This document shows, piece after piece, positions 22,368 through 61,885 of a stretch of 64,000 nucleotides of DNA. Origin of the DNA: Macrostomum lignano. Lineage: Eukaryota. The stretch spans positions 372,001-436,000 of the forward strand of contig NIVC01000006.1 of the NCBI GenBank assembly GCA_002269645.1, written 5' to 3'. Below the pieces are notes generated by a model. That model did not search any database, was not told the DNA's origin, and saw only the letters and a list, made by a program, of their open reading frames with translations. The translations under genes and the position numbers were made by a program. The first letter of the stretch is position 1. Each line of letters opens with the position of its first letter.

Positions 22368-25300
22368 ATCCCCGCTCTCCAATTTCCCGCAGTCTGGGCC
22401 ATCGCAGCCTGAGCGCGCCCAGTCTGGACCATCGGCATCGCCAGCATTTATTCAATGGCGATGGCGGTGGACTTCAGCCTGATCAGCAGCAGCCACCGAT
22501 GGACGCGGCCACTGGCGACTGCGGCCTGCTGTGCAGCCTCCTGCTGCCCGCCTCGCTAGCCGGCGGCAACACTTCGTGCGGCTCGCCCTGCCAGGCTGCC
22601 GCCAATTCGTCCGCTGCCCCCGCCTCTCTGGGCTCGTCCAGGAGGGTGGAGTTTCTCTATCGGGCCAGGTGCGACGATGCCCAGGCTGTGCTGCGGTTTC
22701 TGTCCAGAGGCGGCGGGCCCGTGGATCTGGTGCAGGTAGGCTGGGCGATGGTTTGGCTCTGTGTAGTGTCTGTCAAGTGTCTGTAGTGTCTGTTAAGTTT
22801 CTTACGTGTCTGTGACTTGTCTGTAGGTTCTCTGCTAATTGTCTGTAGTGTCTGTCAAGTGTCTGTAGTGTCTGTCAATTGTCTGTAGTGTCTTTCAATT
22901 CTCTGTAGTGTCTAAATGTGTCCGTAGTGTCTGCCTGTCATCCCCTGTCAAGTGTCTGTTTTTTCTGTCTTTAGTGTCTCTGCCTTCCTGTTTGTCCGCC
23001 TGTGTCTGTGTGTATGTGTCTGTCTCATTCCCTGTGTTTTTATCTGCTTTTTATCAGGTGTTATTTTTTACCGGGTTCATGCTAGTTCTTTTTTGAATTA
23101 AGCGCTTGTACTTTTGCACTTGGTCACGTGACTTCTGTCCCGTCTGTCGAACTGCAGGGCGGCAGCAGGCGCACCGCTCTGTGCTACGCTGCAGCCAATG
23201 GCAACAGCCGCCTGGCCGAGGAGCTCCTGGCGCTCGGCGCAGCGGTGGACGGCCTCGGCTACGAGGTGCCGCTGATCCACGCCTGCGAGCGCGGCCACCT
23301 GGACACTGTCCGGCTCCTGCTGGCCTCTGGCGCGTCGCCCGCTTGTCGAGACGCTCGCGGCTCGACGCCTCTAATTAAAGCGGTCAGTCAGGGACATCTG
23401 GAGGTTGTCCGGTTGCTATTGGATACGGCTGCGGAGTCAGCCGGTGCCTCTGTAGACGCGGTTAGCACTGAGCCCTGCTTCATCTGTCTGGAAGGTGAGG
23501 ATGCCAGCTTAACGTTGGATTTTTTGTATAGAATTGAAAAGTAAATGAAATGCATCGCCAAAGTGAACAAAGCATTTCAGCCCACCCCATAATTCATCAC
23601 TCCATTCAATAATTATTCCGCCTAATAATCATCATCCTATTCAATAATCATCATCTCACCTGAAAATCAACATCCGACTCAATAATCATCATCTCACCTG
23701 AAAATCATCATCTTCCTTGTTAACCATTATCCTACTCAAAAAATATAATCTTACTTGAAAGTTATCGTCCTACACTCCTACTCAATAATCATCTCATCTG
23801 ATAATCATCATCCAACTCAATAAAAATCATCTTTCTTGATAACTATTATCCTACTGAATAATCATCATCCTACTCAATAATCATCATCTCACCTGAAAAT
23901 CATCATCCTACTCAATAATCATCTCATCTGATAATCATCACCCAACTCAATAAAAATCATCTTTCTTGATAACTATTATCCTACTGAATAATCATCATCT
24001 CACCTGAAAATCATCATCCTACTGAATAATCATCATCTCACCTGAAAATCATCATCTCACCTGAAAATCATCATCCTACTCAATAATCATCTCATCTGAT
24101 AATCATCATCCAACTCAATAAAAATCTTCTTTCTTGATAACTATTATCCTACTGAATAATCATCATCTCACCTGAAAATCATCATCCCACTCAATAATCA
24201 TCATCTCACCTGAAAATCATCATCCTACTGAATAATAATCATCTCACCTGAAAATCATCATCCTACTCAATAATCATCATCTCACCTGAAAATCATCATC
24301 CCACTCAATAATCATCATCTCACCTGAAAATCATCATCCTACTGAATAATCATCATCTCACCTGAAAATCATCATCCCACTCAATAATCATCATCTCACC
24401 TGAAAATCATCATCCTACTGAATAATCATCATCTCACCTGAAAATCATCATCCCACTCAATAATAATCATCTCACCTGAAAATCATCATCCTACTGAATA
24501 ATCATCATCTCACCTGAAAATCATCATCCCACTCAATAATCATCATCTCACCTGAAAATCATCATCCTACTGAATAATCATCATCTCACCTGAAAATCAT
24601 CATCCTACTCAATAATAATCATCTCACCTGAAAATCATCATCCCACTCAATAATCATCATCTCACCTGAAAATCATCATCCTACTGAATAATAATCATCT
24701 CACCTGAAAATCATCATCCTACTCAATAATCATCATCTCACCTGAAAATCATCATCCTACTCAATAATCATCATCTCACCTGAAAATCATCATCCCACTC
24801 AATAATCATCATCTCACCTGAAAATCATCATCCTACTGAATAATAATCATCTCACCTGAAAATCATCATCCTACTCAATAATCATCATCTCACCTGAAAA
24901 TCATCATCCCACTCAATAATCATCATCTCACCTGAAAATCATCATCCTACTGAATAATCATCATCTCACCTGAAAATCATCATCCCACTCAATAATCATC
25001 ATCTCACCTGAAAATCATCATCCTACTGAATAATCATCATCTCACCTGAAAATCATCATCCCACTCAATAATCATCATCTCACCTGAAAATCATCATCCT
25101 ACTGAATAATCATCATCTCACCTGAAAATCATCATCCCACTCAATAATCATCATCTCACCTGAAAATCATCATCCTACTGAATAATCATCATCTCACCTG
25201 AAAATCATCATCCCACTCAATAATCATCATCTCACCTGAAAATCATCATCCTACTGAATAATCATCATCTCACCTGAAAATCATCATCCCACTCAATAAT

Positions 25301-29589: not shown

Positions 29590-30555
29590 CTATTTAGGGA
29601 TCAGAATCCCAGCAATGTAGGGATCAGAATCCCAGCAATGTAGGGATAGAATCCCAGCAATTTAGGAATCAGAATCCCAGCAATGTAGGGATCAGAATCA
29701 CAGCAATGTAGGGATCAGAATCACAGCAATGTAGGGATCAGAATCACAGCAATGTAGGGATCAGAATCCCAGCAATGTAGGGATCAGAATCCAAGCAATG
29801 TTGGGATCAGAAACCCAGAAATTTAAGGATCAGAATTCCAAGAATTTAGGGATCAGAATCCCAGCAATGTAGGGATCTGTATCCTAGGAATTTAGGGATC
29901 AGAATCCCAACTGTTTAAGGATCAGAATCCCATCTGTTTAAGGATCAGAATCCCAGGAATTTAGGGATCAGAATCCCAGAAATTTAGGGATCAGAATCCC
30001 AGGAATTTAGGGATCAGAATCCCAGAAATTTAGGGATCAGAATCCCAGAAATTTAGGGATCAGAATCCCAGGTATTTAGGGATCAGAATCCCAGAAATTT
30101 AGGGATCAGAATCCCAGGTATTTAGGGATCAGAATCCCAGAAATTTAGGGATCAGAATCCCAGGAATTTAGGGATCAGAATCCCAGAAATTTAGGGATCA
30201 GAATCCCAGGTATTTAGGGATCAGAATCCCAGAAATTTAGGGATCAGAATCCCAGAAATTTAGGGATCAGAATCCCAGGTATTTAGGGATCAGAATCCCA
30301 GGAATTTAGGGATCAGAATCCCAGGAATTTAGGAATCAGAATCCCAGGTATTTAGGGATCAGAATCCCAGGAATTTAGGGATCAGAATCCCAGGTATTTA
30401 GGGATCAGAATCCCAGGAATTTAGAGATCAGAATCCCAGAAATTCAGGGATTAGAATCCCAGGTATTTAGGGATCAGAATCCCAGCAATGTAGGGATCAG
30501 AATCCCAACTGTTTAAGGATCAGAATCCCAGGAATTTAGGGATCAGAATCCCAAG
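29590..30555. repeat. Minisatellite, 23-bp unit AGGGATCAGAATCCCAGGAATTT
   Basis: About 42 tandem copies directly upstream of the COX15 first acceptor. Confidence 0.95.
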
Positions 30556-30660
30556 AACTTAAGGCGAGAAATTCTTCAACCTTAGGGATCGTAATTGTGC
30601 CCTCCAGTTCGGAACGCTTATTTTCACAGCCTTTATTTATTAACCCTCTCCTCAACTCAG

Positions 30661-31986
30661 TTCGCCATTCGCCACCTGTCAGCGCCGGCCCATCTCGGGC
30701 TGAGCACGGTTCGCTGCTGCTCGTTGAACTCCGGCAGCCTGCTGGCCGCCAACGCTCGCCAATCCCAGTTTGGCTCGCTGTTGCGCAATCGATTGCGTAA
30801 TCAGAGTCGATCTCCGCTAGGCGGCAACGCCATCCGCCGGTGCCACTCGTCGGCGCCTCCGTCGGCTTCGCCGGTCTGGCACCCGATGGTGGCGCATCTC
30901 ACCGCTGGCCAGAGACGCGCCGTCGGCATCTGGCTGGCCACCTGCGCCGGGATGACCGCTGGAGCCGTTGTGCTCGGCGGCCTGACCCGGCTCACGAGGT
31001 CCGGCCTGAGCATGACCAACTGGTCGCTGTTTAAGGTGTTTAAGGGTTACTGCGTATGTCTCTAATCTCACTCAGTCTCTGATCTCACCCAGACTCTAAT
31101 CTCACCCAGGCTTATCTCATCCTTACTGTTGTCTCACCATGACTTATCTTACATAAATCTAGTCTCACCTCGACTCGAATCTCACATTTACTCTAATCTT
31201 AACCCAGCTTTAGTTTCACACTGACTTGAATCTCACTCTGTTTCATCTCCCCCACCCCTAGTCTAATCTCAACAATAATCTAATCTAACCTTTCTCTTAC
31301 CTCACTCTGACTCTAATCTTACCCTTAGCTCTAAAATCTCATCGTTGTCGCTAATTGTCCCTTTTGTCCTCAAACTCAATGCGTTTCTAATCTCACAGTG
31401 TGCCCAATCTCATCTTTAGCTCAAAAGTCATCATTACTATTGGCTCTAATCTTATCATGCTCATATTCTCTCTCACGCGCCCAATCCATTATCAATGGAA
31501 TCCAGGAGCTACCGCCAGTGACTCAGGCAGACTGGGAGCGGGAGTTCCAGCGCTACCAGGCCTACCCGGAGTACGAGTACATCGTGCGCGAGCGAGGCAG
31601 CATGTCGCTGAACGATTTCAAAGCCATCTTCTGGCTGGAGTTTCTGCACAGAACCTGGGGTCGGGCGATCGGAGCTGCCTTCCTCCTGCCGGCCGCTTAC
31701 TTCTGGGCTCGGGGCCGCTTTCAGGTGGGCTGTGCCAGCCAAGATAGGGGCTCGGGTCACGTGATCTGACCATTGGATGTAACTGTACAGCCCAAATTAG
31801 GTTAGTTAGTTCGTTAGTTAGTTAAATCACTTAGTAGGTACTTAGATAGATAGTTACGCTCGTAGTTAATTAATCTGTAATTAGTTCGTTAATTAGATGG
31901 ATAGTTAATTAGTTAGTTATTTATTCAGTTAGTTAGTTAGTTAGTTAGTTAGTCAGTTAGTTAGTTAGTCAGTTAGTTAGTTAGTC

Positions 31987-32017
<31 letters not shown>

Positions 32018-32022
32018 CAGTC

Positions 32023-32053
<31 letters not shown>

Positions 32054-33095
32054 CAATTAGTTAATTAGTTAGTTAGTTAGTTAGTCAGTGAGTTAGTTAG
32101 TTAGTTAGTTAGTTAGTCAGTGAGTTAGTTAGTTAGTTAGTCAGTGAGTTAGTCAGTTAGTCAGCTAGTAAGTCAGTCAGTTAGTTGGTTATTTAGTCAG
32201 TCAGTTAGTCAGTTAGTGGGTTAGTCAGTTAGTGAATTGGATAATATTTCGACACTCAAATCGCAGCCAGCATTGAGTCAAGTAGTTTTGTCAATTCTAC
32301 CACTGATCCCTAAGCAACAACATGTCACACCGCAGTGCCACATGCCGTCCCTACCACCCCCCGCCCCCACCTCAGCCCGCCATGCGCAAGCGAGTGCTAA
32401 TCTACGGCAGTCTAATCCTTGGCCAAGGACTGCTAGGCTGGTACATGGTCCGCAGCGGGCTGAGCAAGGACACCCTGACTCAGGACGTGCCCCGGGTCAG
32501 CCAGTACAGACTGGCCGCTCACCTGGGCTCGGCCCTGCTGCTATTCTCCCTGTTCACCTGGTCGGCCCTCACCCACCTGCTGCCGTTCACTCAATTCGGC
32601 GCCGCCGTGGCTCTGCGCGGCCGCCTGGCCGCCGCTGCCCACCTGCTGACGTCGGCCGCCTTCGCCACGGCCATTTCCGGCGCGTTCGTTGCCGGTATCG
32701 ACGCCGGCTTGGTGTACAACAGCTGGCCGAAGATGGCCGACCGCTGGGTGCCAACCGACTATTGGGCTCTGCAGCCGGCTTGGAGGAATCTGTTTGAGAA
32801 CGCCAGCGCTACTCAGTTCAATCACCGACTGCTGGGGCACAGCACCGCCTGTGCGGTTGCCGCCGTTTGGCTGTGGGCTGTGGCGGCCAAAACTCGCAGA
32901 GCCGCTCTGCCGCCTCGAACTAGGCTGGCGCTGAACAGCCTACTGGCAGTAGTGTGCACCCAGGCCGGGCTGGGCATCGCCACTCTGCTCACCTACGTGC
33001 CCATCGCTTTGGCTGCCTGTCACCAGACTGGCAGTCTGGCTTTGCTGGGCACCGCGACTTGGCTCATGCACGAGCTGAGGCGCGTGCCCAAGTGA
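30661..33095 (+). CDS. COX15: Heme A synthase COX15, 3 exons; no genomic ATG
   Basis: Exons 30661-31035, 31506-31724 and 32376-33095, all phase 0 and GT-AG. Motifs [94 protein letters not shown]. Confidence 0.95.
31790..32235. repeat. (TTAG)n microsatellite in COX15 intron 2
   Basis: Direct. Confidence 0.95.
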
Positions 33096-33842: not shown

Positions 33843-34970
33843 TCAATACAACTTCAGCCTATTTTTCGACTTGCTTGCTGACAAAGATTTGACCACTGTA
33901 AATTTGAGCAAACTGCAGTCCTTGTTGCAACAATTTAATAGGTATCCGTAGCCTATGCGACCCAACATGCCAGCAACTGAATTTGACGACTCTTTTATTG
34001 TCTCCGACGTCTTTGAAGTTGCCGCCGGCTCTTTCATTGTCTCCGACGTCTTTGAAGTTGCCCCCGACGTCTTTGAAGTTGCCGCCGACTCTTTTATTGT
34101 CTCCGACGTCTTTGAAGTTGCCCCCGACGTCTTTGAAGTTGCCGCCGACTCTTTTATTGTCTCCGACGTCTTTGAAGTTTCCGCCGGCTCTTTTATTGTC
34201 TCCAGCGTCTTTGAAGTTGCCACCGGCTCTTTTATTGTCTCCGACGTCTTTGAAGTTGCCGCCGGCTCTTTTATTGTCTCCGACGTCTTTGAAGTTGCCG
34301 CCGACGTCTTTGAAGTTGCCGCCGACGTCTTTGAAGTTGCCGCCGACGTCTTTGAAGTTGCCGCCGACTCTTTTATTGTCTCCGACGTCTTTGAAGTTTC
34401 CGCCGGCTCTTTTATTGTCTCCAGCGTTTTTAAAGTTGCCACCGGCTCTTTTATTGTCTCTGGCGTCTTTGAACTAGCCGACACTTTTATTGTCTCCGAC
34501 GTCTTTGAAGTTGCCGCCAACTCTTTTATTGTCTCCGGCGTCTTTGAAGTACCGGAATCTTTTATTGTCTCCGTAATATTTGAAGTTTCGAACCATTTCA
34601 TTAACTCCGGCGTGCTTGAAGTTGCCGCCGACTCTTTTATTGTCTTTGAAGTCGCCGCCACCTTTGAACTTGCCGCCTTATTAATATTAGCCGTATAAAA
34701 GCCTAACAAAATGCCGTTCCGTTTGACGCTCTCCGGCCAGGCTAATAAACGAGACCGCACTGCCTGGTCAGGCTGTACGAGAGCTAATAAATGCTCATTG
34801 GATTCGAAATCAGTGTCAATCTGTACCGATAGCAACCTGCCAGTGCCAAGAGGTTGACGGCCCACACGATTTCTGTCGCAGTAATAGATGCTAACAGTTG
34901 CTGGAGTGACGCTAGCGTTTGATATTCTCTGCGACATATCGCCGGAACTGGCAACTTGCTGCTGACTCAT
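33843..34970 (-). CDS. Uncharacterised 375-aa ORF with an in-frame Ser/Thr/Lys-rich repeat core (SKTSETIKEPAAT); coding status uncertain
   Basis: ATG-initiated, with ~100 aa of unique N-terminus, a 39/21-bp repeat block (~33990-34680) whose length variants are all multiples of 3, and a unique Cys-containing C-terminus. Confidence 0.4.
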   Translation of the reverse strand: MSQQQVASSGDMSQRISNASVTPATVSIYYCDRNRVGRQPLGTGRLLSVQIDTDFESNEHLLALVQPDQAVRSRLLAWPESVKRNGILLGFYTANINKAASSKVAATSKTIKESAATSSTPELMKWFETSNITETIKDSGTSKTPETIKELAATSKTSETIKVSASSKTPETIKEPVATLKTLETIKEPAETSKTSETIKESAATSKTSAATSKTSAATSKTSAATSKTSETIKEPAATSKTSETIKEPVATSKTLETIKEPAETSKTSETIKESAATSKTSGATSKTSETIKESAATSKTSGATSKTSETMKEPAATSKTSETIKESSNSVAGMLGRIGYGYLLNCCNKDCSLLKFTVVKSLSASKSKNRLKLY

Positions 34971-36034
34971 CGCTGGTCTTGCTTCAGCTTGTCTAATAAG
35001 CTAAGCTATGTACTTAAGTTCGCTTCGGTGATTGTAAATCAACTTCGCTTCCCAGTTCCCCTCTACGAGTTTAGTCCTAGACTCCTAAGGCCATCACCAT
35101 GCATTTGAGACCTTTTGAGAAATTACGTTTATAATCGTTTATGGTACAAAATCAACGTTCAGATCAGAACATTGTATATGGCCCATACTGATATTGGACA
35201 CATTAGCTTTAGCCCATCAACATTTGCCTTCTATCATCGACAATTTTTATCTCAACGCGTGGGGAAACAGAGAAAGCATATAACTTGTCAGGCATAACGC
35301 TTCAAGCACAATGAAGCAAAGAGGTGCCACTTGCAGAAGAGTGCTGTTGAGAAACTGCAAGGTTTCTTCCAACATTAACAGAGAACGGAGAAAGAGCTGT
35401 TTTAAGGCATTTATTTTTAAAATTATCCAGCTACTACCCACACAACTGAACAGTCAATTGAGGAAGCCCGTTTCCGAAAGATCGTTAAAAGAATAAAGAA
35501 ATGCTATATTTCGGTTTCAATTTTTTTTTGCTTCTCGGTCTCCACATCCGTGTGTTTGAGTCGCGCAAATGCATCTTCAAACGCGAAATTCATAGAAATG
35601 GGGCAGTTTGAGGTGAAAGGTCAACTGTCTTTTCACCAATTATCTGTGTCTGTTATATTCTTATGATTTTAGTTCTTACTAGAAAAGGATATATACTCAA
35701 CAACATTAAAAAGTCGCCACCTTTGGCTTTGAGAGTGCGCAGTAAATTCCAGCTCAGTATTGACTTTTCAGTGACACAAGTTGCGCCACGCAACGCAGAG
35801 TTGGGCTGGGTGCGGAGTAATTGGGAAGAGCGGAGGGAGAAGAGAGGATAGCGTGCATGTACGGTACACATACTATAGTATAAGTTAGTTAGTGCCCAGA
35901 GCTCAGCATTACTTCAGCACCAGTCTTTTTGTAGCAATAGTGGCTCTATTCGTACTCTACTACTTTCTGAATAAGTAGCAAAATAGGCGATTGATTGATT
36001 ATGCAATTAAAACGTCACTTATTCGCTCTTTCAG

Positions 36035-39000
36035 TCTGCCGAAGTTGCTTCGTCCGCCGCAGCGGACCGGCCTCCAATTGAGGTGGCCGTCCTTCTGTCC
36101 GACGAGAAGGAGCGCAAGCTGCGCCTCTTCGAACGGTGCCGTCAGAATCCGCCGTCTGGGGTTCGATTCCACCGACTAGATTTAGACGAACTGCTGCAGT
36201 CGGGCAGTCGCTATAGAGTTGTGCTGCACAAGATTCACTCGGAATTGACCTCGAATAAACCCGAATCGATCGATCGTGTCCGGCGGTTTAAAGCTTGGAT
36301 AGAGGCAAGAGGCTCCGAGTTGGTTCTGTTGGACCCTCTGCGCGGCCTCGAGTCCATGCTGCTGTACCGCTTTGCCCAGTGCCAAGCTATGTCCAGGTGT
36401 GCTGGGGCAAAATAAATTTGCCTATTGTGTTCGATTGATTAATCCGCATTTGGTTAGAATATGTTAAGTAGCCAAATCACATGCATACACATCTGTCCAC
36501 GTACTTAAATGCATTCCCGCCCAAGCAGATGTACATTCGGATATCCTCCCAGTCATATGTACATCTTCGCCCATGCAAATGTAACAGTAAACTGCCACGC
36601 ATATGTGATGTACATTATACGCATATCCGCCCAAGCATACGTACGCGCAAATGTACACACCCGCCCACGCACATGTACACATACCCGCCCACGAACATGT
36701 ACACATACCTGCCCACGCACATGTACACCTGCCCGCCCACGCACATGTACACATACCTGCCCACGCACATGTACACACACCCAGGCACTTGTACCGGTAC
36801 ACCTGCCCGCCAAGGTACATGTACACAGACACACACAGGCACTTGTACCGGTACACCTGCCCGCCCACGCACGTACACAAATCCTTCCACGCCGTGAAAT
36901 TTACAGATGCGTCGCCGCATGCCCCGAGCCGCTGCGCCAGCGGGTGTTCGTGCCCCGCTACGCCCTCGTCCAGAACCCTGGCGACCCCGTCGCCGACTCC
37001 AACGGCGCGCTCCGCTTCCCGCTGCTGTGCAAGCCGCATCTGGCCTCCGGAGCGGAGGCGCACAGTATGTCGCTGGTGTTCAATGCCGGACAGCTGGCCG
37101 ACCTGCGGCCGCCCTTGGTGGCTCAGGAGTTTGTCAATCATGGTGCTAGGATTATCAAGGTAAGCATTGATAATTTCCTTTATTTCGGTCCGATAATCCA
37201 GACTCATTTCCTGATTCTTTACTACCAGATAATCCTCATCTTCACTACCAGATAATCCGCCCCTTCACTACCAAATAATCCACCCCTTCACTACCAAATA
37301 ATCCACCCCTTCACTACCAGATAATCCACCCCTTCACTACCAGATAATCCACACCTTCACTACCAGATAATCTGCCCCTTCACTACCAGATAATCTGCCC
37401 CTTCACTACCAGATAATCTGCCCCTTCACTACCAGATAATCTGCCCCTTCACTGCCAGATAATCCACACCTTCACTACCAGATAATCTGCCCCTTCACTA
37501 CCAGATAATCTGCCCCTTCACTACCAGATAATCTGCCCCTTCACTACCAGATAATCTGCCCCTTCACTACCAGATAATCTGCCCCTTCACTACCAGATAA
37601 TCTGCCCCTTCACTACCAGATAATCTGCCCCTTCACTACCAGATAATCTGCCCCTTCACTACCAGATAATCTGCCCCTTCACTACCAGATAATCTGCCCC
37701 TTCACTACCAGATAATCTGCCCCTTCACTGCCAGATAATCTGCCCCTTCACTATCCGATAATCTGCCCCTTCACTACCAGATAATCTGCCCCTTCACTAC
37801 CAGATAATCCGCCCCTTCACTACCAGATAATCTGCCCCTTCACTACCAGATAATCTGCCCCTTCACTACCAGATAATCTGCCCCTTCACTACCAGATAAT
37901 CTGCCCCTTCACTACCAGATAATCTGCCCCTTCACTGCCAGATAATCCACACCTTCACTACCAGATAATCTGCCCCTTCACTACCAGATAATCTGCCCCT
38001 TCACTACCAGATAATCTGCCCCTTCACTGCCAGATAATCCACACCTTCACTACCAGATAATCCACACCTTCACTACCAGATAATCTTCATCTTCACTACC
38101 AGATAATCCGCCCCTTTACTGCCAAATAATCCGCCCCTTCACTACCAGATAATCCGCCCCTTCACTACCAGATGATCCACACCTTCACTACCAGATAATC
38201 TGCCCCTTCACTATCCGATAATCCGCCCCTTCACTATCCGATAATCCGCCCCTTCACTATCCGATAATCCGCCCCTTCACTATCCGATAATCCGCCCCTT
38301 CACTATCCGATAATCCGCCCCTTCACTATCCGATAATCCGCTCATTCACTACCAGATAATCCGCCCCTTCACTGCCAGATAATCCGTCCCTTCACTGCCA
38401 GATAATCCGCCCCTTCACTGCCAGATAATCTGCCCCTTCACTATCCGATAATCTCCCCTTTCACTACCAGATAATCCGCCCCTTCACTACCAGATAATCT
38501 GCCCCTTCACTACCAGATAATCTGCCCCTTCACTACCAGATAATCTGCCCCTTCACTACCAGATAATCTGCCCCTTCACTACCAGATAATCTGCCCCTTC
38601 ACTGCCAGATAATCCACACCTTCACTACCAGATAATCTGCCCCTTCACTACCAGATAATCTGCCCCTTCACTACCAGATAATCTGCCCCTTCACTGCCAG
38701 ATAATCCACACCTTCACTACCAGATAATCCACACCTTCACTACCAGATAATCTTCACCTTCACTACCAGATAATCTGCCCCTTCACTACCAGATAATCTG
38801 CCCCTTCACTACCAGATAATCTGCCCCTTCACTACCAGATAATCCGCCCCTTCACTACCAGATGATCCACACCTTCACTACCAGATAATCTGCCCCTTCA
38901 CTATCCGATAATCCGCCCCTTCACTATCCGATAATCCGCCCCTTCACTATCCGATAATCCGCCCCTTCACTATCCGATAATCCGCCCCTTCACTATCCGA

Positions 39001-40754
39001 TAATCCGCCCCTTCACTATCCGATAATCCGCTCATTCACTACCAGATAATCCGCCCCTTCACTGCCAGATAATCCGTCCCTTCACTGCCAGATAATCCGC
39101 CCCTTCACTGCCAGATAATCTGCCCCTTCACTATCCGATAATCTCCCCTTTCACTACCAGATAATCCGCCCCTTCACTACCAGATAATCTGCCCCTTCAC
39201 TACCAGATAATCTGCCCTTCACTACCAGATAATCTGCCCCTTCACTACCAGATAATCTGCCCCTTCACTACCAGATAATCTGCCCCTTCACTGCCAGATA
39301 ATCCACACCTTCACTACCAGATAATCTGCCCCTTCACTACCAGATAATCTGCCCCTTCACTACCAGATAATCTGCCCCTTCACTGCCAGATAATCCACAC
39401 CTTCACTACCAGATAATCCACACCTTCACTACCAGATAATCTTCACCTTCACTACCAGATAATCTGCCCCTTCACTACCAGATAATCTGCCCCTTCACTA
39501 CCAGATAATCTGCCCCTTCACTACCAGATAATCCGCCCCTTCACTACCAGATGATCCACACCTTCACTACCAGATAATCTGCCCCTTCACTATCCGATAA
39601 TCCGCCCCTTCACTATCCGATAATCCGCCCCTTCACTATCCGATAATCCGCCCCTTCACTATCCGATAATCCGCCCCTTCACTATCCGATAATCCGCCCC
39701 TTCACTATCCGATAATCCGCTCATTCACTACCAGATAATCCGCCCCTTCACTGCCAGATAATCCGTCCCTTCACTGCCAGATAATCCGCCCCTTCACTGC
39801 CAGATAATCTGCCCCTTCACTATCCGATAATCCGCCCCTTCACTATCCGATAATCCGCCCCTTCACTATCCGATAATCCGCCCCTTCACTATCCGATAAT
39901 CCGCCCCTTCACTACCAGATAATCCGCCCCTTCACTATCCGATAATCCGCCCCTTCACTACCAGATAATCCGCCCCTTCACTACCAGATAATCCGCCCCT
40001 TCACTGGCAGATAATCCGCCCCTTCACTACCAGATAATCTGCCCCTTCACCGCCAGATAATCCGCCCCTTCACTGCCAGATAATCCGCCCCTTCACTGCC
40101 AGATAATCCGCCCCTTCACTGGCAGATAATCCGCCCCTTCACTACCAGATAATCCGCCCCTTCACTGGCAGATAATCCGCCCCTTCACTACCAGATAATC
40201 CGCCCCTTCACTGGCAGATAATCCGCCCCTTCACTACCAGATAATCCGCCCCTTCACCGCCAGATAATCCGCCCCTTCACTGCCAGATAATCCGCCCCTT
40301 CACTGGCAGATAATCCGCCCCTTCACTACCAGATAATCTGCCCCTTCACCGCCCCCTTCAACCGCAGGTGTACGTCCTTGGCAGCCGAATTCACGCCTGC
40401 ATTCGTCCGTCAGTTCGCGATTTCCAGGCCGATTACGCCGGCCCGGCCATCCAGTTCTCCAGCCACGCCGTCTCCAAGGCCGGCTGCCAGTCCGAGCTGT
40501 CCGACGCCGCTGCCTCCGCTCAAAACGGCGATGACGGCGAGATGCTGCTGTCCCGCTACTCCGGCCTGCTGGAGCCGCTGTGCCGTGCGTGCCGCTCTGT
40601 GCTCGGCCTCGACCTGCTCAATTTGGACCTGGTGCCCGACACCCGATCTGGTAGATTAGGCCTGGTAGACATTAACCAGTTTCCCGGATTCGAGTCCATG
40701 CCCAACTATGTTGACGCTCTGGTTGAGTTGATCAAGCTGAAGGTTAATTATTAG
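36035..40754 (+). CDS. ITPK1: Inositol-tetrakisphosphate 1-kinase (ATP-grasp), 3 exons; no genomic ATG
   Basis: Exons 36035-36396, 36907-37159 and 40368-40754 join in frame (1002 nt). Motifs [20 protein letters not shown]...[50 protein letters not shown]. Confidence 0.9.
36480..36880. repeat. Degenerate ~24-bp repeat (CATGTACACATACCTGCCCACGCA) in ITPK1 intron 1
   Basis: Direct. Confidence 0.8.
37215..40355. repeat. Intronic minisatellite, 23-bp unit CCAGATAATCTGCCCCTTCACTA, with ~690-bp higher-order repeat
   Basis: Roughly 135 copies. Diagnostic variants recur at 38341/39031/39721 (CTCATTCACT) and 38171/38862/39550 (GATGATCCACACC). Confidence 0.95.
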
Positions 40755-40839
40755 TCAGGACATTGGGCCCCGTCGGGTGAAGGACTGTCGGACTGAGTCG
40801 ATTTGAATAGGAAATCTTTTTATTCCCTGATTTATCCCC

Positions 40840-41800
40840 TCTCCACTTCATTCTATCCCCTCTCCTCTCCATTCTATCCCCTCTCCACTCCATTCTATCC
40901 TCCTCTCCACTTCATTCTATCCCCTCTCCTCTTCATTCTATCCCCTCTCCACTCCATTCTATCCCCTCTCCACTCCATTCTATCCCTTCTCCTCTCCATT
41001 CTATCCCCTCTCCACTCCATTCTATCCCCCTCTCCACTTCATTCTATCCCCTCTCCTCTTCATTCTATCCCCTCTCCACTCCATTCTATCCCCTCTCCAC
41101 TCCATTCTATCCCCTCTCCACTCCATTCTATCCCCTCTCCACTTCATTCTATCCCCTCTCCACTCCATTCTATCCCCTCTCCACTCAATTCTGTCCCCTC
41201 TCCTCTTCATTCTATCCCCTCTCCACTCCATTCTATCCCCTCTCCACTCCATTCTGTCCCCTCTCCTCTTCATTCTATCCCCTCTCCACTCCATTCTATC
41301 CTCCTCTCCACTTCATTCTATCCCCTCTCCTCTTCATTCTATCCCCTCTCCACTCCATTCTATCCCCTCTCCACTCCATTCTATCCCCTCTCCACTTCAT
41401 TCTATCCCCTCTCCACTCCATTCTATCCCTTCTCCTCTCCATTCTATCCCCTCTCCACTCCATTCTATCCCCTCTCCACTCCATTCTATCCCCTCTCCAC
41501 TTCATTCTATCCCCTCTCCACTCCATTCTATCCCCTCTCCACTCAATTCTGTCCCCTCTCCTCTTCATTCTATCCCCTCTCCACTCCATTCTATCCCCTC
41601 TCCACTCCATTCTGTCCCCTCTCCTCTTCATTCTATCCCCTCTCCACTCCATTCTATCCCCTCCACTCCATTCTATCCCCTCTCCACTCCATTCTATCCC
41701 CTCTCCACTTCATTCTATCCCCTCTCCACTCCATTCTATCCCCTCTCCACTCCATTCTGTCCCCTCTCTACTCCATTCTATCCCCTCGCCACTCCATTTG
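40840..41800. repeat. Minisatellite, 21-bp unit CCACTCCATTCTATCCCCTCT
   Basis: About 45 copies 3' of ITPK1. Confidence 0.95.
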
Positions 41801-42324: not shown

Positions 42325-42384
42325 AGTGTCTGACTGTCTGTCTGTCTGTCCGTCTGTCTGTCTGTCTGTCTGTCTGCCTCTCTG

Positions 42385-42429
<45 letters not shown>

Positions 42430-42512
42430 GCCTGCCTGTCTGCCTGTCTGTCTGCCTCTCTGTGTCTGTCTGTCTGTCTGTCTGTCTGCCTCTCTGTGTC
42501 TGCCTGCCTGCC

Positions 42513-42555
<43 letters not shown>

Positions 42556-42684
42556 GTGTGTGTGTCTGTCTGTCTGTCTGTCTGTCTGTCTGCCTGCCTG
42601 CCTGTTTGTCTGTCTGCCTGTCTGTCTGTCTGCCTGCCTGCCTGTTTGTCTGTCTGCCTGTCTGTCTGCCTCTCTGTGTCTGCC

Positions 42685-42729
<45 letters not shown>

Positions 42730-42832
42730 GACTGTCTGTCTGTCTGTCCGTCTGTCTGTCTGTCTGTCCGTCTGTCTGTCTGTCTGCCTGCCTCTCTGTG
42801 TCTGTCTGTCTTAGTGTCTGTCTGTCTATCTT

Positions 42833-42883
<51 letters not shown>

Positions 42884-42905
42884 GCCTCTTTGTGTCTGCC
42901 TGTCT
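42325..42905. repeat. (TCTG)n microsatellite
   Basis: Direct. Confidence 0.95.
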
Positions 42906-43701
42906 GTTTTTCTTTTAGAAATGTAAAGTTTGTCGATTTACACAGGGACAACGGCTGTGTGACATGTTTGAAGGCATTGCGGATGTGAAAGTATACTTTA
43001 TTTTTTATTTTCGGTGCTCATACAGTATAAATGAAATTGAAATATTTTTTCTCTCTTGACGGTAAAATCAGGTAGGTATGCAAAAGGTGAACTTCTTACA
43101 AAAAGTTATAAAGAAGGCATTACAGTATTTCGACTGAGAAAAAAATCTAGATAGAGAAAGGCAGGAAAGCTCTTTAGCGATCAAACAGCTTCTTCTCTGA
43201 AAATCGATAATCTGATTAAAGATAAAGGCATAGTGTGGGCGTTCACTATAACACAAGCTGCAGGTGTGCAAACTAAACTAAAATTGGAACTGTAACTAAA
43301 ACTTGTTGGTTACAGCTATTATATAAAAGTTCAGCCATTGAAAACCTGTCAAAAAACCTTCAGTTTCAGAGTGACGCAGCTGGTGTGAAATGACTTGTGC
43401 AATAAGCTGGCTCGTATATTAAAGCAAGAAGGCCCATTACAGCACAGCAGTTACTTTTTGTTAGAGGCACCCTAAGCGGCATTGTCACACAACTGGCGAT
43501 AGGCATTACTGCCCATTCCGCCGACTCCCCTGAGCAGGCACACACTCACACAGGAGTGTACAGCGGCCCTAACTTTATTTTATCGTTAGGCATGTACACT
43601 TCACTGTGCCTTGGGGGTTGGCCCTCAATGGCATTAATTGCACGAGCTGAGCCAAGCCGAGATTCCAATTCAGCCCCAGTAGCCCCAGTAAAACAGTTGC
43701 T

Positions 43702-44115
43702 AGGCGTAGCCAGGATTCTTCATTGGGAATAGGAGCGCCTCTAAGTAGCAGCTGATATCATTTGAGTAGGCGCCAATCTCATTTGAGTAAGCGCCAATCT
43801 CATTTGAGTAAGCGCCAATCTCATTTGAGTAAGCGCCAATCTCATTTGAGTAAGCGCCAATCTTATTTGAGTAAGCGCCAATCTTATTTGAGTAAGCGCC
43901 AATCTCATTTAAGTAAGCGCCAATCTCATTTAAGTAAGCGCCAATCTCATTTGAGTAAGCGCCAATCTCATTTGAGTAAGCGCCAATCTCATTTGAGTAA
44001 GCGCCAATCTCATTTGAGTAAGCGCCAATCTCATTTGAGTAAGCGCCAATCTCATTTGAATGAACTGCTGCAAGGAGGTACTTTTGCCAGTCAACTGGAT
44101 CCTTGACTACGCCCC
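43702..44115. mobile_element. Putative MITE with GGCGTAG-type imperfect TIRs, carrying an internal 21-bp minisatellite (ATTTGAGTAAGCGCCAATCTC, 43762-44058)
   Basis: GGCGTAGCCAGGAT at 43703 versus ATCCTTGACTACGCC at 44099-44113; no clear TSD. Confidence 0.5.
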
Positions 44116-44505: not shown

Positions 44506-46368
44506 TCAAGCCAGCTCCACTTTCATCTGGTCGCTCTGCTTCGATTGTGACTTCGGCTTTGACGACTTCTTCTGCAGTTTGATCTCCTCTTCGTCGCTGG
44601 ATCCGCCCGGATACTCTTGGCTGCTGTCGTCTTCATCGTCCTCCTCCTCCTTCGGCTGCTCCGCCCGCTGCTCCATGTCGATGCTGATGACGTCATCGTT
44701 TAAAGCGGAGCCGGTGCTCAAAGCGCCGCCGCGCCCGCCGCAACGGCAGCCGACAGGCCGCATCTGCGCTACGGTGTTTGGCATGGCGCGGCCACGTGAC
44801 TCCGGCAGTAGCAGCGCCGCCAGGCCGGCCAAGACGGTGACCGATCCGTACAGCAGGCTGGGCAGGTGCGGGTACACCTGGGACAGGATGCCGCCCAGCT
44901 CCGGGGCCATGAACTGGCCGAGGCCCATCACGCTGAATGCAAAGAACAGCGAGCAGCTGCGCACGGTCGTGGGCAGCACCTCGGAGCCGTAGACGTTCAG
45001 CTCGCTGTAGGCGACGGTGATGCTGAACTTCACCGCGATGGCCACGCAGCTGTGCGCCTGGAACACCACGCTGGGGTCTCTGGGAATGAATGGCATGAGG
45101 ATGAGGCCCAGGCCGCAGAAGCACATGGTGATCACGGTGGTTGGCTTCCTACCAATTCGATTGATCATCTGCCAGGCGATGAGGTAGGCCGGCACCTCCA
45201 ACAGGCCGGAGATGAGCACGTTCAGGTACGGATCCAAGGTGATGAAGTCGCGCTGAAAGCACATGGCGTGATAGACAAATGCGGCGGTGAAAAAGTTGAC
45301 AGTAACCACGGCCAGGGTGATCAAATAATCGGCGTTGAAGATGTTCTCCTTGGGCAGGCACTTGAGGATGCGCCTTGAGGACGCGGAGTCTTCGCCGCTG
45401 TTGACAAATTCGTTGTCGGTCAGTTCGAACTTGTCCAACGCGTTCGGGCAGCCTGAAAATTTGCACACCTGTCGGAGAATTTTCTCCGCCCGACGCGTCT
45501 TGCCCCGGGTGAGCAGCCAGCGAGGCGACTCGGGCAGCACCGGGATGTAGGTGGCGAAGCTCAGGCCCGTGATGACCACCACGGCCATCATCTGGTGTCG
45601 CCAGTTCAGCATGTAGTAGCTAATTGCGGCAGAGCTGCTGTAGGCCACCACCCAGGTCATCCAGAACATGTTGCCGTGCAGGCTGCGGTAGTTTTCCCCG
45701 ACCAGCTCCGTGATGAGTATGAGGCCCATAAGCAGGGCGGGGTCGCCACAGCCCATGAAGAATCTGAGCACCATCTGGGCGGTGAGATCCTTGACGAAGA
45801 CCACAGCCAGGTTGCATGCCAGGTTGAGGTAGCAGAAAGCCACAAGCACTGTCTTGCGGCCGAGCAGATCGCCCAGAGGCCCGACCAGGGTGGACAGGAA
45901 GACGCCGAACTGCAGCACCGTCTGCATTCGGTCGTTGAGATACTGCCTATCGCAGACCATTTCGTACTCGATCAGCATGGTCCACCGGTCCGGGTGGTCG
46001 GGGTTGAACTGCCACGCCTCGCACTTCTCAGTCCCGGTGGCGGCAGCGGAGCTCGAATCGTTCTGAAAGTCATCCTCCAGGTTCAACAGACCGTCAGCGC
46101 CGCGCCAGAACCTCGGCGCTCTGCAGGTGAACTGCTCGATGCTAAAATTCAACGCGAAGCTGTTATTTGCAAGGACGTCAGTCCAGGACAAAGTCTGATT
46201 GTCCACGATCGCTTGGGCGCAGTGGAACGGCACGCTAGCCGTAGCCAAGTTCGTCACGAACATGTCGAATGCGGACTTCATGGACAGCACGGACAGCAGG
46301 ATGGTGATGGTCCAGCGGTAGCCGGGCCCCGACTTGGAGATTTGCTTCAGCAGTTCTTCGTAATTCAT
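44506..46368 (-). CDS. SLC22-like organic cation/anion MFS transporter, paralog 1, intronless, 620 aa
   Basis: Large Cys-containing extracellular loop after TM1 (EYEMVCDR), GDLLGRK, LPESPRWLL, RIGRK, YGSEVLPTTVRS, LLLPESRG; about 12 hydrophobic segments; acidic tail. Confidence 0.92.
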   Translation of the reverse strand: MNYEELLKQISKSGPGYRWTITILLSVLSMKSAFDMFVTNLATASVPFHCAQAIVDNQTLSWTDVLANNSFALNFSIEQFTCRAPRFWRGADGLLNLEDDFQNDSSSAAATGTEKCEAWQFNPDHPDRWTMLIEYEMVCDRQYLNDRMQTVLQFGVFLSTLVGPLGDLLGRKTVLVAFCYLNLACNLAVVFVKDLTAQMVLRFFMGCGDPALLMGLILITELVGENYRSLHGNMFWMTWVVAYSSSAAISYYMLNWRHQMMAVVVITGLSFATYIPVLPESPRWLLTRGKTRRAEKILRQVCKFSGCPNALDKFELTDNEFVNSGEDSASSRRILKCLPKENIFNADYLITLAVVTVNFFTAAFVYHAMCFQRDFITLDPYLNVLISGLLEVPAYLIAWQMINRIGRKPTTVITMCFCGLGLILMPFIPRDPSVVFQAHSCVAIAVKFSITVAYSELNVYGSEVLPTTVRSCSLFFAFSVMGLGQFMAPELGGILSQVYPHLPSLLYGSVTVLAGLAALLLPESRGRAMPNTVAQMRPVGCRCGGRGGALSTGSALNDDVISIDMEQRAEQPKEEEDDEDDSSQEYPGGSSDEEEIKLQKKSSKPKSQSKQSDQMKVELA

Positions 46369-52291: not shown

Positions 52292-54019
52292 TCACACTCT
52301 TAGCGGCTTCATCTCTTCGCCGCAGGCCTCCCCAGCCGATGCTCCCTGCCGCTCCGCCTCATCGCTGCCCGACACGCAGCAGGGACAGCCCACCTGTTCC
52401 ATCTCGGCCACGGTGTTGGGCATGGGCTTGTCCTTGGTCTCGGGCAGCAGCAGGATAGCTAGGCTGGCCAGAACCGAGATCACACCATAGAGCAGGTAGG
52501 GCAGGTGGATGTACCATTGGGCCAGAGCTCCGCCCAGCTCCGGGGCAAGGATTTGAGCCGAGCGCATCAGAAAGCAGGCGAAGAAGAATGAGCAGCTGCG
52601 AACTTTGGTTGGCAGCACCTCGGAGCCGTAGACAGCCAGGACGCTGAAGGCTACGGTGACGCTGAACTTGATGGCGATAGCCAGGACGCTACTGCCCTGA
52701 AACACCACTTCCGGGTCGGTGGGCACATAAGGCAGAATTATGAGGCCGACACCGCAGAAAGCCATGGTGCCGAGACAGGTGTACTTGCGGCCGGCCCTGT
52801 TCGTGAGCTGCCAGGCCAGGATGTAGGCCGGCAGCTCAAGCAGGCCAGAGATCAGCACGTTCAGGTACGGATTATTGGTGATAAAATCGCGCTTGAACGA
52901 CAGGGCGAAGTAGACAAGCGACACGGTGAAGAAGTTGAAGGTCACAACGCCCACGGTGACAAGGTAATCCAGGCGGCACAGGTTCTCTCGCGGTATGAAC
53001 TTAAAGATGCAGCTCTGCTCCTCCCGCTCGTTCGTGTGCTCCGGTGGATCAACCAGCTCGTTGTGCTCGAAGTTGAACTCATTGAGCACCTCTTTGCAGC
53101 CCGAGTACTTGCTGACCTCTTTCAGAATCTTCTTAGCTCGCTTGGTTTTACCACGAGTGAGCAGCCAACGCGGTGACTCCGGCAGCACCGGGATGTAGGT
53201 GGCGTACCCCGCTCCGATGATGAGCACGACTACCACCATTTGAATGCGCCAGTTGTAGATAAAGTAGCTGATTGCTGCTGAGCCGCTGTAAGCGAACACC
53301 CACAGAGTCCAGACTAGGTTGCCATGGATACCGCGATAGTCCTCCGCCACCAGCTCCGTGATGAGTATGATCCCAATGAGCACGGCGGGCGCGCCGAAAC
53401 CCATGCAGAATCTGAGCACCATCTGCAGGGTGAGATTGCGGACGAAGATCACGGCTATGTTGCAGGTGAGATCCAGGTAGCAGAAGGCCACGAGCAGCGG
53501 CTTCCGACCGAGAATGTCGCCCAGAGGACCGAATATTGTCGACAGGCAGATGCCGAACTGCATGACGGTCTGCATGCGGTCCATCAGGTACTTGCGGTCG
53601 CACACCATCTCGTACTCCATGAACATTGTCCACCGCTCGGGTGGGTCCGGCCTAAACGTCCAGGCGCCGCAGACCTCCTCCTTGGGCGTCGCGGTCGACC
53701 CATTGCCGCCAGCCGCCGAGGCCATGGCCATGTGCAGCGAGCCGTCCAAGCCGCGCACGAACTTCGGCCGCTGACAGGTGAAATCGTTGATGCTAAAATT
53801 GGTAGCGAAGGTGTTGTTGGCGAGCACCTCCGACCAGGGCTGCACGGCGCCGTCCACCAGCGCTTCGGCGCAGTGGTAGGGCACGCTGGCGGTGGCCAGG
53901 TTCAACACGAACATGTCGAATGCGGACTTCATGGATAGGAAGGCGATGAGCACGGTGATGATCCATCGGTAGGCCGGGCCTGACTTGGATATGTGAGTCA
54001 GCAGGTCTTCGTAAAGCAT
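52292..54019 (-). CDS. SLC22-like MFS transporter, paralog 2, intronless, 575 aa
   Basis: ATG at 54019 (MLYEDLL, matching MNYEELL of paralog 1; the ORF-track start at 54085 is a non-ATG codon). Same motifs: EYEMVCDR, LPESPRWLL, YGSEVLPTKVRS. Confidence 0.92.
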   Translation of the reverse strand: MLYEDLLTHISKSGPAYRWIITVLIAFLSMKSAFDMFVLNLATASVPYHCAEALVDGAVQPWSEVLANNTFATNFSINDFTCQRPKFVRGLDGSLHMAMASAAGGNGSTATPKEEVCGAWTFRPDPPERWTMFMEYEMVCDRKYLMDRMQTVMQFGICLSTIFGPLGDILGRKPLLVAFCYLDLTCNIAVIFVRNLTLQMVLRFCMGFGAPAVLIGIILITELVAEDYRGIHGNLVWTLWVFAYSGSAAISYFIYNWRIQMVVVVLIIGAGYATYIPVLPESPRWLLTRGKTKRAKKILKEVSKYSGCKEVLNEFNFEHNELVDPPEHTNEREEQSCIFKFIPRENLCRLDYLVTVGVVTFNFFTVSLVYFALSFKRDFITNNPYLNVLISGLLELPAYILAWQLTNRAGRKYTCLGTMAFCGVGLIILPYVPTDPEVVFQGSSVLAIAIKFSVTVAFSVLAVYGSEVLPTKVRSCSFFFACFLMRSAQILAPELGGALAQWYIHLPYLLYGVISVLASLAILLLPETKDKPMPNTVAEMEQVGCPCCVSGSDEAERQGASAGEACGEEMKPLRV

Positions 54020-60119: not shown

Positions 60120-61885
60120 ATGCTTTCAACCGCACTAGAGAAGATGCAGTACGAAGAACTACTCACCAAAATTTCAAAGTCCGGACCCTGCTACCGATGG
60201 GTCATCACCAATCTTATCGCCATCATTTCCATGAAAGCCGCATTCGACATGTTCATACTGAACCTGGTCACGGCCAGTGTGCCCTTCCACTGCGCTGAGA
60301 TCACGCTTGACAACCAGACGGTGCCATGGTCCAGCATCGCTCACAATGCGAGCATGCCTGACAACTTCACCATCAACAGCTTCATCTGCAGTCGTCCTCG
60401 GTTGTTTCGAGACTCGGACGGATCGCTGCGACTCGAATCATCGTCCGAAGGAAACGCATCGACGGTTAATCGGACCAGCGTCCCGGCCGAGGCCTGCAGC
60501 GCGTGGACGTTCTTGCCTGACCCGCCAACCCGCTGGACCATGTTCATGGAGTACTCCATGGTGTGCGAGCGACAGTACTTGATGGATCGAATCCAGACGA
60601 TGCTGCAGTTCGGAATCTGTCTGTCCACCGTGTTTGGTCCCCTGGGCGACATTATCGGCAGAAAGACGGTGTTGGTCGGCTTTGCCTATCTGGACATTTC
60701 CTGCAACATTGCTGTGATATTCGTCCAAGACCTGACGCTGCAGATGGTGCTGCGCTTCATCATGGGGTTCGGTGCTCCAGCGGTCATCATCAGCACCATT
60801 CTCATAACGGAGCTTGTGGCGGAGGACTACAGAGGCATCCACGGAAATCTAATGTGGATTCTGTTCTGCTTAGGATACAGCGGTTCGGCGGCCATCAGCT
60901 ACTTCATTCACAACTGGAGAGTGCAGACAGCGGTGGCCTGCGCCATTGCTGGAGTCGGCTACGCCACATTTATTCCGGTCATTCCGGAGTCTCCGAGATG
61001 GCTGCTCACGCGCGGCTACACAAAAAGAGCCAAGAAAATATTAAAAGAAATCTGCAAGTTTTCCGGTTGCAAGGAGGTGCTCAACGAGTTTAACTTTGAG
61101 CACAACGAGCTGGTTGAGCCTCCGGATGAAAACAAGCCCCAGAGGAGAACTGTATTTTCAAAATTTTTCCCAGGGAGAACCTATGCCGGCTGGAGTACTT
61201 TGTCACTGTCGGTGTACTATCGTTCAACTTTTTCACCGTGTCCCTGGTCTACTTCGCTCTGTCGTTCAAGAGAGACTTCATCACAAAAGATATCTACCTG
61301 AACGTGCTGATCTCTGGCCTACTGGAGATTCCGGCCTACATCCTGGCCTGGCAGCTCACCAACAGGGCTGGCCGCAAGTACACCAGCATGGCTAATATGG
61401 CATTCAGTGGAGTTGGACTTATCATCATGCCTTTCATTCCAACCAACCCGAACATTGTGTTCCAAGGCAGCAGCGTGCTGGCAATCGCCGTCAAGTTCAG
61501 CGTCACCGTTGCCTTCAGTATCCTGGCCGTCTACGGATCCGAAGTTTTGCCGACTAAAGTCCGCAGCTGCTCATTCTTCGTTGCCTCCATTTTGATGCGG
61601 GGCGCTCAACTGCTGGCACCGGAGATCGGCGGTGCTCTGGCGAGTCTCTACGACAACTTGCCGTCTCTGTTGTACGGCGTGATCTGCGTCCTGGCCAGCC
61701 TGACCATCCTGCTCCTGCCCGAGAGCAAGGACAGGCCGATGCCCAACACCGTGGCTGAGATGGAGCCTGTGGGCTGTCCCTGCGGCGCCCGGAGAACTGA
61801 ACTTGCAACCAATGCTTCCGGCGCCAATGCTCAAGTTGATGAAGACGAGATGAAACCTCTGCAAGTGTTCTCCGTGGACGTTTGA
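60120..61885 (+). CDS. SLC22-like MFS transporter, paralog 3, intronless, with a single-base frameshift at 61137-61140
   Basis: ORFs 60120-61301 and 61238-61885 are two halves of one gene. Adding one C to CCCC gives NKPPEENCIFKIFPRENLCRLEY, collinear with paralog 2 (SCIFKFIPRENLCRLDY). The homologous start is probably ATG 60144. Confidence 0.88.

Follow-up and report, generated by a model that had tools for sequence, protein, structure and literature searches.

The ITPK1 gene of the flatworm Macrostomum lignano lacks a genomic start codon and very probably receives one from the spliced leader

We analyzed a 64,000-nt stretch of the genome of the flatworm Macrostomum lignano (NIVC01000006.1:372001-436000, assembly Mlig_3_7, GCA_002269645.1; hereafter the window, whose own numbering is used throughout) with respect to its plus-strand gene for inositol-tetrakisphosphate 1-kinase, ITPK1. 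The reading frame of this gene opens in phase 0 directly at a 3' splice acceptor and has no start codon in the genome, and the N-terminus of the encoded protein is complete. The missing codon is very probably supplied by the spliced leader (SL), joined to the acceptor at 36034/36035 in such a way that the terminal AUG of the leader serves as codon 1. The mechanism itself is not new, as the ITPK1 case is an instance of the flatworm SL 3'-AUG initiator that has been known since 2006.

The ITPK1 reading frame begins at a splice acceptor

The acceptor reads ...acttattcgctctttcag/TCT GCC GAA GTT GCT; its AG occupies 36033-36034, and the exon starts at 36035. The frame is closed 9 codons upstream by a TAA at 36008-36010 (plus strand), and no in-frame ATG follows this stop. 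The ATG at 36001-36003 lies in a different frame from ITPK1 and opens a 26-codon upstream open reading frame (uORF; 36001-36081, plus strand, with its TGA at 36079-81), which could be present only where trans-splicing has not taken place. From 36035 onwards the ITPK1 frame stays open up to the donor at 36396/GT. Its first in-frame genomic ATG is codon 108, that is, residue 109 if the SL methionine is counted as residue 1, and it lies downstream of the sequence blocks VVLHKI (residues 63-68) and VLLDPL (residues 98-103). An earlier note on this DNA had described a frame starting at the acceptor with TCT GCC GAA GTT, the in-frame TAA at 36008-36010, the out-of-frame ATG at 36001 and a first in-frame Met located behind the VVLHKI/VLLDPL block; on reading the sequence we found these statements to be accurate to the base.

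The polypyrimidine tract and acceptor (cttattcgctctttcAG, 36018-36034, plus strand) have a pyrimidine share of 82% at positions -20 to -4, and the terminal TTTCAG (cgctctttcag/TCT) matches the published SL-acceptor motif [T/C]TNCAG. Across the acceptor, GC content increases from 0.35 to 0.64 (100 nt on either side). Four AG dinucleotides follow the in-frame stop before homology sets in. Only two of them, the one at 36035 and a weak one at 36083, are in phase 0, the sites at 36045 and 36063 being out of phase with the ITPK1 frame. Another good acceptor-like site, gacttttcag/TGA, was noticed at 35762-35774 (plus strand), 263 nt upstream of the ITPK1 acceptor; trans-splicing at this site would set the SL AUG directly before a stop codon.

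The exon structure, obtained by spliced alignment of the annotated protein, comprises three exons with 333 genomic codons, all on the plus strand. Exon 1 (36035-36396, 362 nt, phase 0 at the acceptor, donor CAG/gtgtgc) encodes residues 2-121 (SAEVASS...QAMS) and breaks off after the second base of the R122 codon. It is followed by intron 1 (36397-36906), which contains a 24-nt tandem repeat at 36646-36827, and by exon 2 (36907-37159, 253 nt, donor AAG/gtaagc). Intron 2 (37160-40367) consists almost entirely of a 23-nt tandem array with about 136 copies (37217-40349) and a strongly negative GC skew. Exon 3 (40368-40754, acceptor aaccgcag/GTG) carries the C-terminal part of the ATP-grasp domain, including the DINQFPG motif, and ends in ...KLKVNY with the stop codon TAG at 40752-40754.

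Identity and N-terminal completeness of the protein

Judged by its sequence, the gene product is inositol-tetrakisphosphate 1-kinase, with a predicted length of 334 amino acids including the SL Met. The protein matches PF05770 (Ins134_P3_kin, ATP-grasp) with E=7.5e-41 over residues 133-328, corresponding to profile positions 5-199 of 201. In a phmmer comparison with the structures of human ITPK1 (2odt, 2q7d, 2qb5), residues 19-325 align to human residues 12-314 with E of about 1e-35. These two matches confirm the assignment to ITPK1 that had been made in the earlier note. The N-terminal domain PF17927 of Pfam was not detected in the ITPK1 protein at E ≤ 1. As the alignment pairs residue 19 with human residue 12, the protein with the SL Met would be 7 residues longer than the human enzyme at its N-terminus; the N-terminus is thus complete relative to human ITPK1, which indicates that no N-terminal exon is missing. 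Initiation at Met109, on the other hand, would remove the residues that align to human residues 12-105, that is, the whole of the aligned N-terminal domain.

Gene models in public databases

The protein encoded by exons 1 and 2 is 100% identical to BOX15_Mlig024962g2, which is recorded as 'hypothetical protein, partial [Macrostomum lignano]'. Altogether, five Met-less models of ITPK1 from two assemblies begin at the acceptor or 3 nt after it. Three of these are NCBI models that are flagged 'partial' and begin at GCC, 3 nt after the AG, and the two WormBase/UniProt models, which derive from an earlier assembly, begin with SAEVASS exactly at the AG. For the NCBI set, transcripts were cut at peaks of SL-containing reads by TBONE and then processed with TransDecoder (PMC5730564). 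Since an in-frame stop lies only 27 nt upstream and the open reading frame (ORF) was nevertheless called 5'-partial, the 5' end of the underlying transcript should lie within a few bases of the acceptor. The 90% protein cluster of ITPK1 contains NCBI and UniRef members only, and no RNA-derived (Logan) protein was found in it.

A side observation concerns the position of these starts. The NCBI coding sequences of ITPK1 (from 36038) and of the neighboring gene COX15 (from 30664) both begin 3 nt past the AG and lose the first genomic codon (S and F, respectively). The recurrence of the shift in both genes suggests a one-base offset in the pipeline, and it looks like a systematic annotation offset for genes that depend on the SL AUG.

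The spliced leader as the probable source of the start codon

The M. lignano SL is 35 nt long (CGGTCTCTTACTGCGAAGACTCAATTTATTGCATG) and ends in ATG, followed by GTAAG (PMC8629364). About 30% of the genes of this organism receive this one 35-nt leader, and the top SL-acceptor motif is the [T/C]TNCAG mentioned above (PMC8629364). In the G3 2023 genome paper, translation is stated to begin, in all likelihood, at the terminal ATG of the Macrostomum SL (PMC10468722). Flatworm leaders have an AUG conserved at their 3' end, and PMC9851317, PMC12582326 and PMC3510090 credit Cheng et al. 2006 with the finding that it serves as the initiator Met in flatworms. Of 187 SL clusters of Echinococcus granulosus, 143 need the SL ATG as their start in order to be full length; these cases include two mitochondrial proteins, a subunit of NADH-ubiquinone oxidoreductase and COX6B, and the use of the SL ATG as a start is conserved across Neodermata (PMC3510090). 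A search allowing up to 3 mismatches found no SL exon in the 64-kb window, so the SL RNA gene must lie elsewhere; an Rfam scan of the window at the gathering threshold likewise gave no match.

ITPK1 is separated from its upstream neighbor, a divergent minus-strand gene with its ATG at 34970, by an intergenic region of 1,064 bp (34971-36034, plus strand), which would comprise both the promoter and the outron and which contains 11 plus-strand ATGs. Given this divergent orientation, ITPK1 is not an internal gene of an operon, and any promoter, outron or additional exon belonging to it has to fit into 34971-36034. We propose that the ITPK1 pre-mRNA is transcribed from a promoter within this 1-kb region, which it would have in common with the divergent neighbor. 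The spliceosome would then remove the outron, the 5' part of the pre-mRNA with its 11 upstream ATGs and the in-frame TAA, and the 35-nt leader (...UUAUUGCAUG) would be joined to the acceptor at 36034/36035. In the trans-spliced mRNA, the 3' part of the leader, ...CAATTTATTGCATG, would precede exon 1, and the junction would read ...TTGCATG/TCTGCCGAAG, the first gene base being NIVC01000006.1:408035 (window 36035). With an acceptor in phase 0, the terminal AUG of the leader would become codon 1. The mRNA would accordingly read AUG UCU GCC GAA... and its product MSAEVASS..., and the full-length kinase of 334 amino acids would be made from an mRNA with a 5' untranslated region of 32 nt.

The addition of an AUG by the SL to give MSAEVASS... 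had already been put forward in the earlier note, and it gains support from the acceptor motif, the phase 0 acceptor, the complete N-terminus and the Met-less gene models. The further suggestion made there, of a systematic mechanism, is also supported: it corresponds to the established flatworm SL 3'-AUG initiator, and the same anatomy is seen in three genes of the window.

Comparison of the three genome copies

The locus is present in three copies, namely the GCA_002269645.1 locus of the window itself (L001, equal to window 26038-50754 at 100% identity), L002 and L003 (NIVC01001004.1, Mlig024962.g1). The three-exon ORF of 333 codons is intact in all three, and the first 100 nt of exon 1 are identical in all of them. 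Pairwise comparisons of the ITPK1 coding sequence show 3-5 synonymous and 1-3 non-synonymous differences, and the density of substitutions among the copies is 13-18 per kb upstream versus 2-4 per kb in exon 1. The acceptor is kept in L001 and L002. The array of intron 2 differs in size from copy to copy; in L002 the intron measures about 2.3 kb, in L003 no more than about 0.26 kb.

Several points speak against the proposed use of the SL AUG and have to be set beside the evidence for it. In L003 the acceptor CAG is changed to CTG (L003:9996-9997, corresponding to window 36033), so that the AG is lost, and the frame is still open; the new CTG is itself in frame. Two amino acid changes, R37H and N154D, are private to L003. 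Together with the lost AG, they raise the possibility of a decaying duplicate or of an error in the assembly; an alternative mode of initiation is a further reading that could apply to this copy. Within the window itself, a second and weaker phase 0 AG at 36081-82 (caattgag/GTG, exon from 36083) would yield a protein that starts with MVAVLL...; this site has neither a pyrimidine tract nor the SL-acceptor motif. The joining of the SL at 36034/36035 is deduced, with indirect support from the annotation, and translation from the SL AUG in M. lignano is assumed by analogy with other flatworms. Neither Mlig024962 nor Mlig017294 is mentioned in the supplementary tables of PMC5816591. Finally, the three copies are about 98-99% identical to each other, which leaves tests of conservation with little power; at this degree of similarity, the comparison is useful only for eliminating a candidate upstream exon, as described below.

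Alternative explanations

The best surviving alternative to initiation at the SL AUG is that an upstream cis-spliced exon, either a regular coding exon or a first exon transcribed from an alternative promoter and spliced to the same acceptor, has been missed and supplies the ATG. Such an arrangement would not be without parallel, as cis- and trans-splicing often share acceptors in parasitic flatworms (PMC12582326). We considered every plus-strand ATG in the intergenic region 34971-36034 whose open frame reaches an in-phase GT. Weak in-phase candidates were obtained, among them ATG35598..GAG/GTGAAA and ATG35857..ATA/GTATAAG, but no candidate in these 1,064 bp carries a GT[AG]AG donor, a sequence that is present at 122,399 of 187,627 cis-donor regions of M. 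lignano (PMC8629364). The least bad of the candidates, the exon starting at ATG35598 and ending at GAG/GTGAAA, was rejected, since it is destroyed in both other genome copies (a 1-nt insertion leads to a stop in L002, and the ATG is changed to ATA in L003) while the coding sequence is kept intact in all copies. Moreover, only 1,064 bp are available before the divergent gene, the protein already exceeds human ITPK1 in length at its N-terminus, and no such exon appears in any of the five models from two assemblies. There is thus no plausible upstream coding exon for ITPK1, and we consider this explanation very unlikely. The earlier note had also argued that missed exons are not the cause of the missing ATG, a position that now rests on the complete N-terminus, the lack of any candidate with a GT[AG]AG donor and the five models without an upstream exon.

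A slightly smaller chance is given to the possibility that no AUG is added at all and that translation starts either at a near-cognate codon of exon 1 (ATT16, GTG18 or CTG22) or at Met109. In-frame near-cognate codons do occur early in exon 1, and the mutated acceptor triplet of L003 happens to be an in-frame CTG. A start at Met109, however, would delete the entire N-terminal domain, as outlined above, and without trans-splicing as many as 11 upstream ATGs would remain in the RNA, among them that of the uORF overlapping the start region. Furthermore, the organism has a ready donor of an AUG in the form of its SL, and the ITPK1 acceptor is in phase with it.

The remaining explanation, that the locus is a decaying duplicate, a pseudogene or an artefact of assembly from which the start codon has disappeared, could draw on the hidden polyploidy of M. 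lignano with its many duplicated loci (PMC10468722) and on the loss of the AG in L003, but it is the least probable of all, given the intact 333-codon ORF in three of three copies with 3-5 synonymous versus 1-3 non-synonymous differences per pair, the high-scoring ATP-grasp domain (E=7.5e-41), the same Met-less start in two independent assemblies and the same anatomy in two unrelated neighboring genes.

Other genes without a start codon in the window

Initiation at the SL AUG may extend beyond ITPK1. The earlier note had counted three ATG-less cases in this one window, and three were indeed found, with acceptors at 11138 (minus strand), 30661 and 36035. Three of the about 10 recognizable genes of the 64-kb window therefore lack a start codon of their own, and two of these encode mitochondrial proteins.

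The first exon of COX15 (30661-31035, plus strand) follows the acceptor ctcaactcag/TTC GCC, and its first genomic Met is codon 76. The frame is closed by a TAA 23 codons before the acceptor, and no ATG lies in the interval. The 55 residues that follow the acceptor include 7 basic and no acidic ones and resemble a mitochondrial presequence. The COX15 acceptor is kept in all three genome copies (L001, L002 and L003).

The second of these genes (7499-11138, minus strand) encodes an NDH2-type NADH dehydrogenase with the Pyr_redox_2 and NDH2_C domains. Exon 1 (10641-11138, minus strand; acceptor ctgctttcag/TTG GCA, donor AAG/gtgaga) has 166 coding codons without a single Met, and an in-frame TAA lies 15 codons upstream. 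The match to Pyr_redox_2 starts at residue 41, at profile position 2, and the sequence at the N-terminus is presequence-like. A homologue search with this exon returned no M. lignano entry, and no identical protein was found in the protein collection, so the gene may be unannotated in GenBank.

An ankyrin-repeat gene was considered as an additional case and rejected, because a genomic ATG is found 7 codons after its in-phase acceptor-like site at 22478. This site (ggacttcag/CCT, 22478-22501, plus strand) is in phase with the ORF; if the SL were joined there, its AUG would lengthen the protein slightly at the N-terminus.

Neighboring genes and repeats

The ankyrin-repeat gene ends at 27311 (plus strand) and is followed by COX15, annotated at 30664-33095 (plus strand). 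The divergent neighbor of ITPK1 (33843-34970, minus strand) encodes a repeat protein with its own ATG, for which no Pfam match was found. Its coding region is built of 21/39-nt tandem repeats (33987-34645), and its annotated length is 335, 253 and 470 amino acids in the three copies. Downstream of ITPK1 (annotated at 36038-40754, plus strand) are three paralogous genes for MFS sugar transporters. Two of them, at 44506-46368 and 52292-54019 (both on the minus strand), consist of a single exon and have their own ATG; the third, at 60120-61885 (plus strand), comprises two overlapping ORFs that point to an intron or a frameshift. The 393-amino-acid ORF of this third gene (60120-61301) has no counterpart among the recorded proteins. 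Additional tandem arrays are located at 30000-30561, 40833-41798, 42327-42907 and 43758-44059.

Implications for the annotation of M. lignano genes

ITPK1 provides a clean, base-exact example of a known flatworm peculiarity; its value is a practical one, and it opens no new biological question. For schistosomes, a few dozen cases of obligate dependence on the SL AUG are documented. Whether such dependence is far more widespread in M. lignano is a matter on which we consider the chances to be evenly balanced; a genome-wide count of genes of M. lignano that depend on the SL AUG was not found in a literature search. If true, the origin of this dependence would lie no later than the base of Rhabditophora, and thousands of M. 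lignano proteins would be filed as 'partial' while lacking only the Met (UniProt) or the Met and the next residue (NCBI). Gene finders and the rules of GenBank handle such genes as 5'-partial. For M. lignano, which serves as a transgenic model of regeneration, this affects protein catalogues, predictions of N-terminal targeting (as for COX15 and the NDH2-type protein) and the design of reporters.

Comparison with known systems

The kinase itself resembles human ITPK1 (2odt, 2q7d, 2qb5) in being an ATP-grasp inositol-phosphate kinase with shared IHK, LDPL and DINxFPG motifs. The similarity between the two proteins is modest, and the human gene, in contrast to that of M. lignano, has its own genomic ATG.

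With respect to the start codon, the closest parallel is the SL AUG of Schistosoma mansoni and S. japonicum (Cheng, Cohen, Ndegwa & Davis 2006, J Biol Chem 281:733). As far as that work is represented in the later papers that cite it, the schistosome cases share with ITPK1 a leader that ends in AUG, an acceptor whose phase matches an ORF lacking a start codon in the genome, and the need for the SL AUG if the N-terminus is to match those of conserved orthologues. There are also differences: M. lignano belongs to Macrostomorpha, free-living and early-branching worms outside Neodermata, its SL has a distinct sequence (35 nt, CGGTCTC...TTGCATG), and initiation was shown in schistosomes, again according to these citing papers, whereas in M. 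lignano the ITPK1 junction and its translation are predicted from the genome. Echinococcus granulosus offers a second parallel, as mitochondrial proteins are among its SL-ATG genes just as COX15 and the NDH2-type protein are the other cases in the window; the evidence there comes from cDNA and here from genome and annotation (PMC3510090).

The TBONE-based annotation of M. lignano (Wudarski et al. 2017, PMC5730564; Ustyantsev & Berezikov 2021, PMC8629364) concerns the same organism, the same leader and the same acceptor motif. Transcripts cut at SL-read peaks are consistent with the 5'-partial coding sequences of ITPK1 and COX15 (PMC5730564). The accessible sections of these two papers contain neither a count of SL-ATG-dependent genes nor a mention of ITPK1.

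The slORFs of nematodes, Oikopleura and trypanosomes, detected with slORFfinder (PMC9851317), likewise derive their start codon from a spliced leader. They differ in that their start is in most cases a non-AUG (NUG) codon within the leader and that they often represent alternative ORFs, whereas in ITPK1 the canonical AUG at the very end of the leader would make the main ORF of the gene.

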